Sequence record: NC_041917.1
DNA: 64,000 nt
Reading direction: 5' to 3' (one strand)
The notes under the pieces were generated by a model. The model was not told where the DNA came from. It saw only the letters and a list, made by a program, of their open reading frames with translations, and did no database searches. Of this stretch, positions 1-16,276 are shown in pieces (the first letter of the stretch is position 1; the number at the start of each line of letters is the position of its first letter). The translations under genes and the position numbers were made by a program.

Positions 1-268
1 TATCTTCTCCTGAAGTCGCATAGTACTTCGCACTTTTTGTTCAATCACCTTTTTTCAAAAATGATAACATGAGGTTCAGGAAAATCTCGAAGGTACGTGA
101 AATCAAATACGAATTCTAAAAAATTTGGAGTACCCTCTAGACTTTTGCTGAGATCTCGAAAGTACAAAAAACATATAAGGAAGTGTGAAAATTTTATTGA
201 ATTGAAAAGTACTAAAGTACTATTTTGTACTGTACAAAAACACAGTACAAAAATAATTGAAATAAACC

Positions 269-297
269 TTGACGTGTTACGGGTGCGATGATATGAT
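269..297 (+). promoter_or_regulatory. sigma70-like promoter with no downstream ORF
   Basis: TTGACG(269-274)-17 nt-TATGAT(292-297). Confidence 0.7.
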
Positions 298-303
298 GTA
301 TCC

Positions 304-470
304 AAGATGAAGAACACAGTTAGACACCTCTCTCGTTGACGCTGTATGAATCATCTAGTACTGGTAAATTGCCGAACATGTTGCCGCATGTTATTACTGG
401 TACGAAATGGGAATACCTTATTCCCCTCTCTCTTTCTCGCTATTGTTCAGGAAAGATTTAGTACTGAACG
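304..470 (+). ncRNA. candidate structured ncRNA
   Basis: Follows the promoter; helices 305-310/351-356, 358-367/394-403, 375-380/387-392, 409-415/419-425, 445-450/464-469; no ORF. Confidence 0.4.
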
Positions 471-748
471 TTTGGAAGTAATACTGTACTAATTAGGATA
501 GTACTTTATAATGAGTTCTCATGAAGCACACGCTGGAGAATATATTATAAAGTACTATCCTTTTTTGCATTGTACTATAAGAATAGAAGTACTAATAGAG
601 TACCTTTTGATAGATGGATTTGTTTTGAGGATTGTCTGAATTTTGGGTGTACTATCCCTATCTGCTATCTATAGATGGATAGACTTCTGGCAGTGTAGAT
701 GTATAGATGGTTGAACGTCTAGACAGCTATCCTTCTGGATGGCTAAAT

Positions 749-788
749 GTCTAAACGTCTAGATGGTTATCCCTCTAGACGTTTAGAC
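749..788. repeat. perfect 15-bp inverted repeat
   Basis: GTCTAAACGTCTAGA(749-763)/TCTAGACGTTTAGAC(774-788), 10-nt loop. Confidence 0.95.
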
Positions 789-982
789 GGCTAAACGCTT
801 TTTTGTCTCGATTTTCCATTAGTTCCCCTTCCGCGTCTAGTTAGTACTAGGCAGAATCGAAAGGCGTCTTTTCGTGTTGACAGAGCTATATTATCAAACG
901 GTGATCCATTATGCAAGGACTTTTTTCAATAAAAATAAATTTGACAAGTACAAACCGGATGTAGTACTATAATCACAACAAA

Positions 983-1007
983 GAGAAATTTGTAGCCCAC
1001 AGGGTGC
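983..1007 (+). repeat. promoter-locked element E1
   Basis: GAGAAAT-TTGTAG-CCCACAGGGTGC; promoter TTGACA 941/TACTAT 965-970. Confidence 0.85.
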
Positions 1008-1070
1008 CAAGATCCGCCTATTAGAAATTAAATGCGAATGAGAATCATTACCGATTATAGGTATATCTCC

Positions 1071-1096
1071 GCACCCTCTGGGGTATCCGATTTCTC
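1071..1096 (-). repeat. promoter-locked element E2
   Basis: Minus strand GAGAAAT-CGGAT-ACCCCAGAGGGTGC; minus promoter TTGCAT(1137-1132)-17-TATTAT(1114-1109). Confidence 0.9.
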
Positions 1097-1520
1097 TCGT
1101 CTGAAATAATAATATCAAAGTACGGTATAAGATGCAAGGACTTTTTTCGTTTTTGGTGAAAATAGTTTAGATCGTTGTATACGTATAAAGGAAAGGATTT
1201 AAAAGGCGAACAGGTGGAGCGGGGCGAAGGTATAGCAGTACTATATAAACGCCGTGTAATGGTTCCTATGCGTTATATGGGGGCATGTACACGTATAAAG
1301 GAAAGAAACCCTATAGCAGAACTATTTTTAAAAAGATTGCATAAAGTACTTGCAAAGGTTTACCGGTATGATAATATCTATCTCGTCAACACGACACCGC
1401 TCTTTAACAACTTGCTAGACAATTACTTGATAGTGATTCTTCTCTTTAGAAATAAGGAAAAAGAAAAACAAAAAAGTACTTGACGGCAAGAATGGAAAGT
1501 GTAGAATGTTGGTTATCGAA

Positions 1521-1651
1521 AGGCGGTAAGGTTCGCCGGATGATAGGAAAGGGTAACAGGGCAAAATAAAGTACTGTTGCAGTGTGAAGCCGAAAGTGCT
1601 CACATAGCCTTATAAAAAGCTTACTAACTGTAAGTGACCTATCTACCGCCT
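1521..1651 (+). ncRNA. candidate multibranch ncRNA
   Basis: Promoter TTGACG 1480/TAGAAT 1502; AGGCGGTA 1521-1528 and GATAGG 1542-1547 pair with contiguous CCTATC-TACCGCCT 1638-1651; three internal hairpins. Confidence 0.6.
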
Positions 1652-1785
1652 AACGATGTAACAAAAAAAAGTTTCTAAGAAGTTGAAAAAAGTACTTGAC
1701 GGATAGAAACGAAACGTAGTAATATGTGTTCAAGCCAAACGGCTTACCAAACAAACTAAACTAAACTTTTAAGAGGATTTAAATC

Positions 1786-2448
1786 ATGACTACTACCAAC
1801 AACGCAAAAGCTACCCGTATCACTCTGAACTCTATCGTTTTCGCCAATGCTCCAGTACTGGCAGCGGTTGCCGAAGGTGAACAGCCTCACAGCAAAGAAG
1901 TGATCGCACAGCACAAAACGCAGGTAGCGGAGTTTGTTGCAAATCAGGGTAAAGAACTGGCTGGCTACATTCTCGGCAAAGTTGAAACTCCTGACGTGAT
2001 TCTGGCGATTCTGAAAGAAGCCGCTAAACAGGTTCCAGCAGTACAGAAACAACTGGCAGAAGAAGCCGCGAAAGCCGAAGCCGAAGCCGCAGAACAGCGT
2101 AAAAAAGACGCTGAAGCCGCTGAAGCGAAACGCAAAGCTGATGAAGAAGCACTTCAGGCCGAAAAAGATAAAATGTTGAAAATCCTTACTGATAGCGGTC
2201 TGGATCTGGAAATCGCTCAAACAATGGTCGCCGCTGGCCTGAAAGCAAAAGCACCAGCGAACGCACCGAAAAACAGCTACGAACGTGTAGCGGTAACGGT
2301 GAACGGCAAAGGTTATGATGTTCCAGTACGTGGGAACATGAGCGAAGAACTCAAAGCACTGGTTGCTAAAGACGGCGGGGATCGTGAAGCGTTTATCAAC
2401 AAATACCGCAACGAACCAGCAGCAGCAGAAACCAACACCGCCGAATAA
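1786..2448 (+). CDS. coiled-coil protein with H-NS-like C-terminal half
   Basis: GAGGA SD, own promoter; KMLKILTDSGLD..GLKAKA..VNGKGYDVPVRGNMSEELKALVAKDGGDREAFI parallels H-NS as recalled from memory. Confidence 0.5.
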   Translation: MTTTNNAKATRITLNSIVFANAPVLAAVAEGEQPHSKEVIAQHKTQVAEFVANQGKELAGYILGKVETPDVILAILKEAAKQVPAVQKQLAEEAAKAEAEAAEQRKKDAEAAEAKRKADEEALQAEKDKMLKILTDSGLDLEIAQTMVAAGLKAKAPANAPKNSYERVAVTVNGKGYDVPVRGNMSEELKALVAKDGGDREAFINKYRNEPAAAETNTAE

Positions 2449-2468
2449 TATCACGGCGTAACGCGAAA

Positions 2469-2486
2469 GGGGGCTAACTAGCCCCC
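2469..2486 (+). terminator. GC hairpin after 1786 gene
   Basis: GGGGGC-TAACTA-GCCCCC; weak U-tract. Confidence 0.5.
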
Positions 2487-2578
2487 TAAGCCGTTCTAAC
2501 AGTACTGTAATGCAATCGGTTATAGTACTGTTAAAACGTCTTAGAAACGATCCTACGGCGTTCTACAATACCTTTTAA

Positions 2579-2863
2579 GTGAGAGTAAACGCTATGGAAC
2601 TAAAACCCATTACAGAGTTAATTGATCCTAAGACAAGGATCGCCCGAACGATGAACGCCGTTAGCAGTACTAAACAAGTATATAGCGGCTATCTGGCTTT
2701 TGTTGTAGATGGGAAGATCCTACAACGCAGGATCTATGATATGGCTTATAATAGCCTTTATGATTCCTGTATGTATATAGTACACCAGAAAGTTAACTAT
2801 GCCGTTAATGTATCAGCTAAACCAATTAGCGGGGCGTTTAACGTTGAATCCTTAACTGTATAA
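2579..2863 (+). CDS. hypothetical protein
   Basis: ORF track; start uncertain. Confidence 0.45.
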   Translation: MRVNAMELKPITELIDPKTRIARTMNAVSSTKQVYSGYLAFVVDGKILQRRIYDMAYNSLYDSCMYIVHQKVNYAVNVSAKPISGAFNVESLTV

Positions 2864-2933
2864 AATTTAGTTTTATTCATAAATATTAAAGCCGCATTGA
2901 TTGGCAATGCGGCTTTTTATTATGGATTAAATT

Positions 2934-3350
2934 ATGAGATACAAAAAACCTGAACCTGTACATATTCAAGGAAAATGCGTTATAGATGGATGTGACAATC
3001 TACAGGCAGTAGTTAAGAAAAACAAATACGGGGCAAGATGTAGCAAACATCTTAGGGAATCATGGCAATCTAATGATCCTGAAATTTTCAAGTATCTAAG
3101 CATTAAAAGATTATATGGATTAGAAAAAGAAGACTATATAAAACTACTTGAATCACAAGATTATAAGTGTTACATTTGTGGAACTCATCAAGATGATAGC
3201 AGTAGAGAAGTATTATATGTTGACCATGATCACAGTACTAATAAAATCCGTGGGTTATTATGTCATCATTGTAATACTGGTATAGGAAATTTTAAAGATG
3301 ATCCTGAACTCTTACAACGTGCTATAGACTATTTGAAAAAGAATTCATAA
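2934..3350 (+). CDS. endonuclease VII-family HNH endonuclease
   Basis: CYICG..VDHDH.T.KIRGLLCHHCNTGIGNFKDD signature. Confidence 0.85.
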   Translation: MRYKKPEPVHIQGKCVIDGCDNLQAVVKKNKYGARCSKHLRESWQSNDPEIFKYLSIKRLYGLEKEDYIKLLESQDYKCYICGTHQDDSSREVLYVDHDHSTNKIRGLLCHHCNTGIGNFKDDPELLQRAIDYLKKNS

Positions 3351-3941: not shown

Positions 3942-4334
3942 ATGGAACGTAATGAGCAATTTAGATTAGTTCTTGAAGTACTGGAAAACATGCAAGCTTG
4001 TTTAGATGTTAATGATACATATGTGCGTATCAATGGCAAGAGTTTTAATCTTAATCGACATGCGGGGATCTGCTGGCATGTTCTCGCCTATACTCCTAAT
4101 TGTGATTATTCAGGTATTGGATTAGAATATCTTTCCCCGTTGTTTGTTAGTATGGGCTTACATCCTCATTATCCTGTAGAAATGCAGATCGTTAATGAGT
4201 TAGATCAAGCCCGTTGGATTCATTCAAAAGCAACAGATCAATATAATATCTTGGGCGAAGAAGGAAAGATCCGCCGTAAACTTTTAAAGGATTTGATTCA
4301 GTACTATAAAAAAGAGCTTGCAATTGAATCGTAA
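3942..4334 (+). CDS. hypothetical early protein
   Basis: Own promoter, AAGGA SD. Confidence 0.8.
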   Translation: MERNEQFRLVLEVLENMQACLDVNDTYVRINGKSFNLNRHAGICWHVLAYTPNCDYSGIGLEYLSPLFVSMGLHPHYPVEMQIVNELDQARWIHSKATDQYNILGEEGKIRRKLLKDLIQYYKKELAIES

Positions 4335-4373
4335 TACTGTATAATCTTTTATATCGAAACGGGAGATATAAAC

Positions 4374-4829
4374 ATGAATAGCAAACAATTTCAAGATGCA
4401 ACAAGAGAAGCCTTTTTGAAGTACTTCCCAAATGGCTACATTGGTATTTCTAAATTGTCAATGGGTGGCGGTTGTGGTATCTTCTGCGGGTTGATTGGTG
4501 ACATTAATGATGTGGGCGGGAAGATCCGCATGAATGACCCAATGACAGTACGGGCATTCATTCATGATAATTTTTCATTCAATGACGAAACAACTGATTT
4601 AGAAAATGTTGTTATCGAATTCGATGGATCTTGGATCTCAGTACTTCCAGACAATCCACACAATTATTGTCAATCTCACAAGGTGCCTAGTCGCAAGATT
4701 AACGCGGAGCCGTCAAAGGCATTAATTAATCTAGATAAGTACTTTAAACGCTTAAAGGATAGTGTAACCGAACAAGCTGGATTGAATCGTATTATTCAGC
4801 AAGAAAAGATCCCCGCAAAATATCTATAA
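4374..4829 (+). CDS. hypothetical early protein
   Basis: Own promoter, GGAG SD. Confidence 0.8.
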   Translation: MNSKQFQDATREAFLKYFPNGYIGISKLSMGGGCGIFCGLIGDINDVGGKIRMNDPMTVRAFIHDNFSFNDETTDLENVVIEFDGSWISVLPDNPHNYCQSHKVPSRKINAEPSKALINLDKYFKRLKDSVTEQAGLNRIIQQEKIPAKYL

Positions 4830-13192: not shown

Positions 13193-13247
13193 TTAAAATA
13201 AAGACTTGACTCGTTCAGGTCTTTTTTTGTATACTATATTCAATCCA

Positions 13248-14197: not shown

Positions 14198-14248
14198 AAA
14201 TAAAGGCTTGACACGTTCAAGCCTTTTTGTTATAGTACTATCACTCCA

Positions 14249-15660: not shown

Positions 15661-15719
15661 AAGAATTACAAAAAGTACTTGACTACGGTCAGGTACTTTG
15701 TTATAGTTATATTACTCCA

Positions 15720-16221: not shown

Positions 16222-16276
16222 TTAAAAATAGGGGTTGACGAGAGTCAGCCCTTTTTGCTATAATAATTCCAATGAA

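Follow-up and report, generated by a model that had tools for sequence, protein, structure and literature searches.

Few structured non-coding RNAs (ncRNAs) have been described from lytic phages, and almost none of them has a known role. The pRNA of phage phi29 (RF00044) lies at the left end of its genome behind an early promoter, with its ends paired in a long helix and a three-way junction at its core, and among the phi29-type pRNAs of related phages structure is shared more than sequence. In phage T7, the RNase III hairpin R0.3 of the Dunn and Studier map, which is not annotated in the sequence record, lies between boxA and gene 0.3. The put RNA of phage HK022 is ~70 nt long and consists of two side-by-side stem-loops that adopt a V shape with a triplex (PMC9378689), and the jumbo phage PA5oct, a distant relative of the phage studied here, produces two abundant ncRNAs from its terminal-repeat region (PMC7318152). 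Here we describe a structured RNA element of 145 nt (1514–1658, + strand) near the left genome end of Serratia phage BF, a Rak2-like jumbo myovirus of the genus Eneladusvirus with a genome of 357 kb. The DNA analysed, hereafter the window, is a stretch of 64,000 nucleotides corresponding to bases 1–64000 of NC_041917 (100% identity over 1–3000), and coordinates refer to it unless another phage is named.

The element lies in the 1785 bases without an annotated gene that precede gp001, the first annotated gene of the record (coding sequence 1786–2448). The homologous stretch of phage CBB is located within a direct terminal repeat of 22.4 kb (PMC5259590), and phage fENko-Kae01 has a direct terminal repeat of 19.7 kb. 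Because BF, CBB and phage Munch all begin with TATC, base 1 of the window is probably the physical left end of the genome.

A structured RNA conserved in one clade of jumbo phages

The segment 1514–1658 has a minimum free energy (MFE) of −47.8 kcal/mol, as against −32.0 ± 3.6 kcal/mol for 200 dinucleotide-shuffled sequences (z = −4.36), none of which folded as well. Its minus strand folds 6 kcal/mol worse, and the shape of the module is retained when it is folded within a 417-nt read-through transcript. BLAST searches of a phage collection recovered homologues from six Erwinia pEa_SNUABM phages (~99% identity), the Yersinia phages fHe-Yen9-03 and fHe-Yen9-04 (~86%), and phages CBB, GAP32, XbC2 and Kaldavass (72–78%). 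We extended this set by pattern scans and then by a profile and the covariance model R1, which added three giant-phage contigs from IMG/VR (L013, cut at the contig end; L114, 355 kb; L131, 371 kb). Among 87 metagenomic loci containing the 18-base core only L061 and L098 were real, and these are one sequence read from opposite strands. Within the window R1 finds a single copy (170 bits).

Outside this group the element was not recovered. R1 found no copy in the loci fetched from Hallingskeid, Munch, fENko-Kae01 and EJP2, more distantly related Rak2-like phages that we located via the C-terminal domain of gp001. A pattern scan of 185,579 bacterial species genomes returned 48 loci with the core word, all of them from unrelated bacteria and about half from uncultured soil or water metagenome bins, none of which was an R1 match (the best scored 19.6 bits over a 44-nt hairpin), and 1340–1700 had no match by blastn (word size 11) in all 5,426 complete Escherichia coli genomes. 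The element is thus distributed among Eneladus-/Mimas-type jumbo phages and metagenomic giant-phage contigs only, and the synteny around it is the same in every homologue.

Although known from only ten lineages, the element is well supported. The fold is kept in all ten distinct homologues, and in their model-based alignment 93.2% of the pair cells hold a standard pair and 13 pairs are changed on both sides, a number reached by none of 500 shuffles; when partners were slid by one to three columns, 26–47% remained paired. For a plain MAFFT alignment, which is not fitted to the structure, the corresponding figures are 91.3% and 11, with 27–45% paired when partners were slid. At least one compensatory pair is found in each of P0, P1, P3, P4, P5, the base of P6, and P7. 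A preliminary description of this DNA, made from its letters alone, had proposed a multibranch RNA here and had named covariation among homologues as a way to check it; the shuffles, the paired cells and the compensatory changes together bear the structure out, and every pairing that it listed is present in the sequence where it was placed, while its length of ~135 nt has to be corrected to about 145 nt. Conservation points the same way, as among BF, CBB and XbC2 the element is 77–79% identical, compared with 59–63% for the gp001 coding sequence and 49–73% for the flanking spacers, and it is therefore under stronger constraint than its neighbours. The 5′-terminal 35 nt are nearly invariant and their 3′ partners vary. 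The + strand is fixed by the many G-U pairs in the alignment and by the low scores of R1 on the reverse strand of three homologues, which reach only 8–12 bits.

The module comprises seven helices, P0–P7, arranged as three successive three-way junctions beneath a closing helix that pairs the 5′ with the 3′ end. The outermost helix, P0 (1514–1518 with 1654–1658), keeps its pairing through a change from G-C to A-U in L114 and from U-A to C-G in L061. P1 (1521–1528, AGGCGGTA, with 1644–1651, TACCGCCT) shows double changes from U-A to C-G in GAP32 and from A-U to U-A in L131, as well as wobble changes in CBB and L114. The mini-hairpin P2, GG-UUCG-CC (1530–1537), lies within the invariant block AGGUUCGCCG and has identical letters in all homologues, so that covariation neither supports nor refutes its pairing; judged by sequence, an alternative local hairpin of GGCG (1522–1525) with CGCC (1535–1538) is equally possible and could form before the 3′ arm of P1 exists. 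P3 (1542–1548 with 1637–1643, including GATAGG at 1542–1547 and CCTATC at 1638–1643) is paired in 97% of cells; two of its pairs show a one-sided change only, to G-U, and its innermost pair is A-U or U-A in eight of the ten sequences and A-A in BF. The strands of the P1/P2/P3 junction are A, GGAU and none (1, 4 and 0 nt).

Further in, P4 (1549–1552 with 1608–1611), which encloses the hairpins P5 and P6, is paired in 100% of cells, and one of its pairs is C-G in seven sequences and G-C in three. P5 (1553–1580; 1553–1559 with 1574–1580, including AACAG at 1555–1559 and CTGTT at 1574–1578, and an inner 1561–1562 with 1571–1572) is likewise fully paired, with two pairs changed on both sides, and carries the loop motif AGUACU in all homologues except L114 (TGTACT). 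P6 (1582–1605), which includes TGTGA..GC / GC..TCACA (1583–1604) and has a C-GAAA-G tetraloop in BF, is the variable arm: its basal four pairs covary and three pairs are changed on both sides, while its apical part differs among subgroups (76% of cells paired). P7 (1619–1635, including CTTAC at 1620–1624 and GTAAG at 1630–1634), a hairpin with the conserved loop UAAC, is paired in 100% of cells of the model-based alignment and has two pairs changed on both sides. The three-way junction of the preliminary description stands, and is seen in the separate MFE structures of CBB, GAP32 and L061 and in the consensus fold of the alignment, but it was incomplete, as P4 adds two interior three-way junctions and P0 a further outer helix. 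The MFE structure of BF by itself draws the P2/P3 area differently from the consensus.

Several candidate contacts and signals within the fold were considered and rejected on comparison of the homologues. A pseudoknot between the UUCG loop of P2 and CGAA at 1517–1520 does not agree with L114, which has CAGG in place of CGAA yet keeps UUCG, and the P2–P6 kissing loop (UUCG with CGAA) for which BF has the letters finds no counterpart in the Yersinia phages, Kaldavass and L061. CsrA-type GGA motifs in J2/3 are not conserved, the Yersinia phages having GUAUG and Kaldavass GCAUG. The −10-like TAAGGT at 1527–1532, a possible sigma-dependent pause element, is not conserved either, GAP32 having CAAGGT at this place, and Kaldavass, XbC2 and the Yersinia phages TCAGGT.

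None of the known families accounts for the element. The 4227 models of Rfam 15, which include 6S, Y RNA/YrlA, pRNA, c4, ribozymes and riboswitches, gave no match in the whole window at gathering thresholds, and a scan of 1–2600 at E ≤ 10 with permissive filters gave nothing overlapping 1480–1660, in keeping with the preliminary description, which had recognized no family either. ARAGORN found no tRNA or tmRNA gene in the window. There is no + strand open reading frame (ORF) of at least 30 amino acids in BF 1484–1785, a six-frame comparison of the homologues found no frame with a common start and stop on either strand, and the seeming conservation of peptides is that of the translated promoter and the invariant 5′ block. 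We therefore reject a small protein gene, for which there is no conserved reading frame. Short ORFs have been annotated over the element or its promoter in CBB (1427–1615), GAP32 (4330–4503) and Kaldavass (1496–1585 and 1651–1788); they are discordant in frame, strand and ends, and are probably mis-annotations of RNA and signal space. More generally, annotation of these genomes should treat the ‘empty’ leader of 1.8 kb as a region of RNA and signals, and the short hypothetical ORFs called there in several records are probably spurious. In the literature we found nothing tying Eneladusvirus, Mimasvirus or CBB to ncRNAs. By the tests applied, the element is a new RNA family, restricted to one clade of jumbo phages.

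Promoters, boxA and predicted read-through in the leader

The element is preceded by a sigma-70 promoter of its own at 1480–1507, as the preliminary description had proposed. A consensus scan recovers it with the −35 hexamer TTGACG (1480–1485), a spacer of 16 nt and the −10 hexamer TAGAAT (1502–1507), and an A-rich tract plus AGTAC lies ahead of it. The nine aligned sequences have the same letters throughout the block GTACTTGAC, which spans the −35 hexamer, and the block GTGTAGAATGT, in which the −10 lies. We infer from these signals that the element is transcribed and, from the spacing to the −10 ending at 1507, that its transcript starts at 1514–1515, that is, 0–1 nt from the first base of P0.

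Two further promoters flank this one. About 130 nt upstream of it lies an early promoter at 1350–1377 (−35 TTGCAA at 1350–1355, extended −10 TGATAATAT at 1369–1377) whose core letters do not vary among the seven lineages of the alignment; its assignment rests on this conservation, because its score is below the threshold of the consensus scan. Downstream, the promoter before gp001 (1696–1725, TTGACG-18-TAATAT) begins 38 nt after the element, was found by the consensus scan and is conserved in the nine-sequence alignment, and a small hairpin lies at the 5′ end of the transcript behind it. A separate promoter for the next gene had been part of the preliminary description, which put it at ~1694.

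Scanning of the + strand from 1350 to the start of gp001 at 1786 revealed no intrinsic terminator. P0 is followed by an A-rich tract, which acts as upstream sequence for the next promoter, whose −35 is at 1696, and in CBB and GAP32 an additional hairpin without a U-tract follows the element. RNA started at 1514 would therefore be expected to run into gp001, a discrete small RNA would require processing, and the stand-alone RNA of the preliminary description is thus not established. Transcripts from the boxA-carrying promoter at 1350 should likewise read through the element. Further downstream, a strong intrinsic terminator (2888–2916) is followed 18 nt on by the endonuclease VII gene with no promoter between them. 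A promoter of its own precedes most of the early genes in the window, and in many cases it overlaps the terminator hairpin of the unit before. Such fused terminator–promoter units recur through the early region (e.g. 13200–13224, 14202–14226, 15672–15699 and 16230–16253), with the −35 TTGAC of the next promoter in the loop-proximal arm of the hairpin and the −10 a few bases past the stem.

Behind the 1350 promoter lies an rrn-type boxA (1395–1410, + strand) with its flanks, CAC + CGCTCTTTA + ACAA, the exact match being at 1399–1407. This site, some 14 nt past the predicted transcript start and 105 nt upstream of the element, was missed in the preliminary description, as were the T7-like tandem early promoters. 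It fits the gamma-proteobacterial consensus GYTCTTTAANA (PMC5725501), and agrees in 16 of 19 letters with the rrn cac-boxA-spacer RNA on which NusA binding has been studied, with a leading C as in the lambda boxA (PMC2724277). In every lineage that has the element, boxA occupies the same place, 97–106 nt ahead of it, and no + strand boxA was found in the fetched loci of the phages without the element (Hallingskeid, Munch, fENko-Kae01 and EJP2). The element itself contains none; the sole + strand boxA, at 1399–1409, belongs to the neighbouring transcription unit.

The boxA region is shared with T7 as well. A 13-mer, CGCTCTTTAACAA, is identical in T7 (812–824) and BF (1398–1410), and in T7 it sits between A3 (750), the third of the tandem host promoters, and gene 0.3 (925). 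The BF leader is built like the T7 early leader and the rrn leader, with inward-pointing tandem host promoters, A/T-rich upstream tracts, boxA, a structured RNA and the first gene. The main role reported for Nus factors at boxA is in the folding of rRNA (PMC5725501). As an exact rrn-type boxA adjoins the element and is shared with T7, Rak2-like jumbo phages may make use of the Nus machinery of their host, a link that, as far as we found, has not been noted for them before.

Possible roles of the element

We put at roughly 0.4 the probability that the element is an early, stable small RNA of a new family, which is made from an rrn-like cassette, processed free and active through a protein partner. 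Host sigma-70 RNA polymerase would transcribe it right upon DNA entry from the 1.8-kb ORF-free left-end leader (terminal-repeat region) of the Eneladus-/Mimas-type jumbo phages, and would do so from two sources, namely its own promoter, with the start at the foot of the closing helix, and the longer transcript begun at the promoter 130 nt upstream. On the longer transcript the host Nus complex, NusB/NusE with its partners, would assemble at boxA in the same way as on the precursors of rRNA. Endo- or exonucleolytic trimming back to the terminal helix (P0–P1 stacked on P3), which we infer because no terminator follows the element, would then free the 145-nt module. The resulting small RNA would be stable and persist, its invariant junctions and loops binding a host or phage protein and serving as scaffold or decoy in the takeover of the cell.

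Signs of such an RNA are the dedicated promoter with its invariant core letters and a predicted start at the helix foot, and an intricate branched core that is tightly conserved, its junction and loop bases being invariant. Excised stable RNAs (tRNA, 5S, 6S, RNase P RNA, pRNA and the processing stems of rRNA) have as their hallmark a terminal helix in which the two ends are paired, and by analogy that of the element may be a sign of the same fate. Because a separate promoter serves gp001, this gene has no need of the element in its mRNA. The presence of boxA, given the role of Nus factors in rRNA folding, and the precedent of the abundant terminal-repeat ncRNAs of PA5oct would also be consistent with this reading, again by analogy.

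Other observations weigh against a free, stable RNA. With neither a terminator nor a U-tract after the element, a discrete 3′ end presupposes processing; transcripts from the element's own promoter lack boxA; and the partner protein is a postulated one. The near-invariance of the 5′ 35 nt opposite varying 3′ partners would be explained no less well by a role during transcription or on the DNA itself, and as the synteny is identical throughout, genomic context cannot tell action in trans from action in cis. Searches of sequencing runs returned the element only in low-depth Logan contigs, in which RNA and DNA are indistinguishable and transcript ends or depth steps unreadable: one run of uncertain kind held a BF-like phage at a depth of ~4, two nominal RNA runs are flagged as probably DNA, and one wastewater metatranscriptome gave a few pieces of 30–150 nt, at least two of them from a relative.

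Among the rival explanations, one that we hold to be unlikely is a put-like modifier of RNA polymerase acting in cis, in which the nascent RNA stays on its polymerase and renders it resistant to pause sites and terminators throughout the early region, an end that the neighbouring promoter would reach via boxA and Nus factors. The element begins at the 5′ end of its transcript, as does putL (first paired residue at +3; PMC9378689), its first 35 nt are its most invariant part, it adjoins another antitermination signal, boxA, and no terminator stands between it and the genes downstream; the strong terminator at 2888–2916 has behind it the endonuclease VII gene, with no promoter between the two. 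However, its architecture (145 nt and seven helices versus ~70 nt and two adjacent stem-loops) is different, the helix closing its 5′ and 3′ ends can form only once the entire element has been made, the −10-like TAAGGT near the start of the transcript varies among the homologues, and because most early genes have their own promoter, processive antitermination is not obviously needed. It is improbable, too, that the element serves the leader as a processing or stability element like R0.3 of T7, the RNA having no function of its own. On the longer transcript the terminal helix would then be a site at which RNase III or another nuclease separates the leader from the gp001 mRNA, and on transcripts started at 1514 the 5′ structure would protect the mRNA from 5′-end-dependent decay. 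The T7-like layout (tandem host promoters A1–A3, the identical boxA 13-mer and gene 0.3) speaks for this, as do the helices P0, P1 and P3, which could stack to ~20 bp, the small hairpin at the 5′ end behind the gp001 promoter, and further long hairpins between early genes, e.g. 2483–2547 (z = −5.8 for 2452–2562). Yet a simple hairpin would do for such a purpose, whereas compensatory change has preserved a module of seven helices and three junctions, with many unpaired bases invariant, that is more conserved than gp001; moreover, with the gp001 promoter downstream of the element much of the gp001 mRNA would be without it. Measured against the irregular hairpin of approximately two helical turns of a T7-type RNase III site, the stack would offer 5 bp of P0, a 2 × 2 loop, 8 bp of P1 and 7 bp of stacked P3, is broken by P2, and has a branched domain in place of a loop.

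Nothing specific favours either of two further explanations. Very unlikely is an origin or primer transcript, with an R-loop in the A/T-rich stretch that follows (as in T4 oriF/oriG or ColE1 RNA II), or a set of DNA-level protein sites near the genome end. The position 1.5 kb from the physical left end and near the repeat arrays at 640–800, the A-rich tract after the element, the inverted repeat GGCG-N8-CGCC in the invariant block and the presence in the P5 loop of AGTACT, a genome-wide DNA motif, would suit it; the compensatory changes and G-U pairs, on the other hand, reflect selection on RNA pairing of the + strand and not on DNA sequence alone, and there is nothing here that demonstrates the initiation of replication. 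Least likely of all is a new self-cleaving ribozyme or ligand-binding aptamer, even though the size, the branched shape and the conserved junction nucleotides are within the range of such RNAs, and the order of helices (helix, hairpin, helix, helix, two hairpins, hairpin) recalls the VS ribozyme with its three three-way junctions, a resemblance that we treat as a lead only. The models of known ribozymes and riboswitches gave no match up to E = 10, the junction strands of 1, 4 and 0 nt do not fit the hammerhead core CUGANGA / GAAA / H, and the candidate P2–P6 loop–loop pairing is, as described above, absent from several homologues. A riboswitch would also have no expression platform, since the conserved, independent promoter at 1696–1725 separates the element from gp001, and no terminator or helix sequestering a ribosome-binding site was found linked to it.

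A bolder form of the preferred reading, the stable early RNA, may be stated, although we regard it as doubtful. A mini rRNA-operon mimic at the entering genome end, with candidate components in the UP-like promoters, the exact rrn boxA recruiting the Nus complex, and the structured RNA closed by a stem of its flanks, would mass-produce a new stable RNA in the first minutes of infection, and the resulting RNA–protein particle would redirect the cell; in a cis version, the element would be a second, structurally new class of factor-independent polymerase-reprogramming RNA, like put. Should the element prove to be the stable RNA of such a particle, or a modifier of the polymerase like put, a very short list would gain a new class. 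The element has a clear expression signal and belongs to a narrow clade of cultivable phages, on Serratia, Erwinia, Yersinia, Pectobacterium and Cronobacter, which makes it directly testable.

Neighbouring features and comparison with known systems

The remainder of the leader holds further structures and repeats. Some 0.7 kb from the genome end, 640–800 is a dense array of short repeats of the types TAGATGG, TAGACG and CTATCC, kept in CBB, XbC2 and Kaldavass, which could be a terminase, replication or injection signal. A first promoter unit (promoter 269–297) closes with a terminator-like hairpin (409–435) followed by a C/U-rich tract, and could be the source of a separate RNA of ~135 nt; the region of this hairpin is not conserved in CBB. 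Behind a promoter at 941 lies a second promoter-proximal structured RNA (983–1097, + strand), a long hairpin with the arms CCCACAGGGTGC / GCACCCTCTGGGG and the outer arms AGAGAAAT / GATTTCTCT, which shows seven compensatory pairs in nine sequences. Hairpins of this type are also present in Munch (~1000–1110) and, in two copies, in Hallingskeid (~1230–1330 and ~1770–1860), so that it is commoner among Rak2-like phages than the element at 1514–1658. Its apex (1036–1053) is a Fur-box-like palindrome, GCGAATGAGAATCATTAC, which by eye agrees in 15 of 19 letters with the Fur consensus, and arrays of GAGAATGATTATCAT-type repeats lie just upstream in Munch (690–790) and Hallingskeid (940–1040); to judge from these letters, such repeats may titrate, or be controlled by, the iron regulator of the host. 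A conserved stretch of 95 nt that lies between this RNA and the element is bordered by a direct repeat, ACGTATAAAGGAAAG (1181–1195 and 1291–1305), which is also found in relatives.

On the other side of the element, gp001 encodes a protein with a coiled middle rich in Ala, Glu and Lys and a conserved C-terminal domain (Y-x-R-V-x6-G-x2-Y-x2-P-x2-G-N-M). Only the C-terminal part is common to more distant Rak2-like phages; full-length gp001 is present in the same phages as the RNA element. Sequence searches of Pfam, PHROGs and PDB assigned it no function, and with these null results we do not regard it as an obvious RNA-binding partner; protein-language-model features give a weak pointer to H-NS/MvaT (0.68), a lead only. 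The gap between gp001 and gp002 contains a GC hairpin (2468–2487) and a long hairpin of ~22 bp (2488–2542) made from two inverted copies of AGTACTG; matches to Rfam miRNA models here are at chance level only, and the hairpins (2468–2547) resemble the RNase III-type sites between genes of the T7 early mRNA. Across the 64 kb there are 286 copies of the palindrome AGTACT, 13-fold above the 21 expected from base composition, with the highest density in 1–24000, the next most enriched 6-bp palindrome reaching 2-fold only. The consensus of the early promoters includes AGTACT (AAAGTACTTGAC at −35, and CAGTACTGTATAAT at −10 in relatives), yet it is far commoner than promoters.

How, then, does the element compare with known systems? 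Like the T7 early leader, that of BF has tandem, inward-pointing strong promoters of host type at the left genome end, a structured RNA between boxA and the first gene, and no terminator ahead of that gene. T7, however, has a single irregular hairpin cut by RNase III instead of a seven-helix module of 145 nt, the BF module has its own promoter directly before it and another directly after, and sequence similarity is limited to boxA (R1 scores at most 9 bits on T7). With the rrn leader and precursor the BF leader shares A/T-rich tracts upstream of the promoters, a consensus boxA with its CAC flank, and a structured RNA enclosed by a helix of its own 5′ and 3′ flanks; the BF module differs in its size, 145 nt as opposed to kilobases, and in having its own promoter downstream of boxA, so that only part of the transcripts would carry boxA.

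The sites putL and putR of HK022 resemble the BF element in being early phage RNA at the 5′ end of a transcript, just behind a host-type promoter, that continues into the early genes, with no terminator-like site between the promoter and the genes served (1480–1786 in BF) and no dedicated protein gene evident. At 145 nt and closed by a terminal helix, the BF element is different in build and has no sequence similarity that we could see. The put RNA suppresses pausing and termination independently of other factors, by way of the beta′ zinc-binding domain of the polymerase, and such an activity of the BF element would be argued by analogy. The phi29 pRNA has in common with it the left-end position, a promoter ahead, paired 5′ and 3′ ends and a three-way junction; differences are the absence of an Rfam match and of a conserved pair of mutually complementary loops in the element. 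Packaging of the T4 type is not known to need a pRNA. Rak2-like phages have been reported to be T4-like by portal phylogeny and by their T4-type replication proteins (PMC5259590). Finally, ncRNA001 and ncRNA002 of PA5oct are likewise non-coding and come from a long terminal-repeat region in a jumbo phage whose transcription depends on the host polymerase, but are not homologous (R1 at most 10 bits), are longer (236 and 451 nt), and have no reported structure or covariation. The kind of RNA, an early phage non-coding or leader RNA, is thus already known, while the architecture of the BF element and its rrn/T7-like setting are new.

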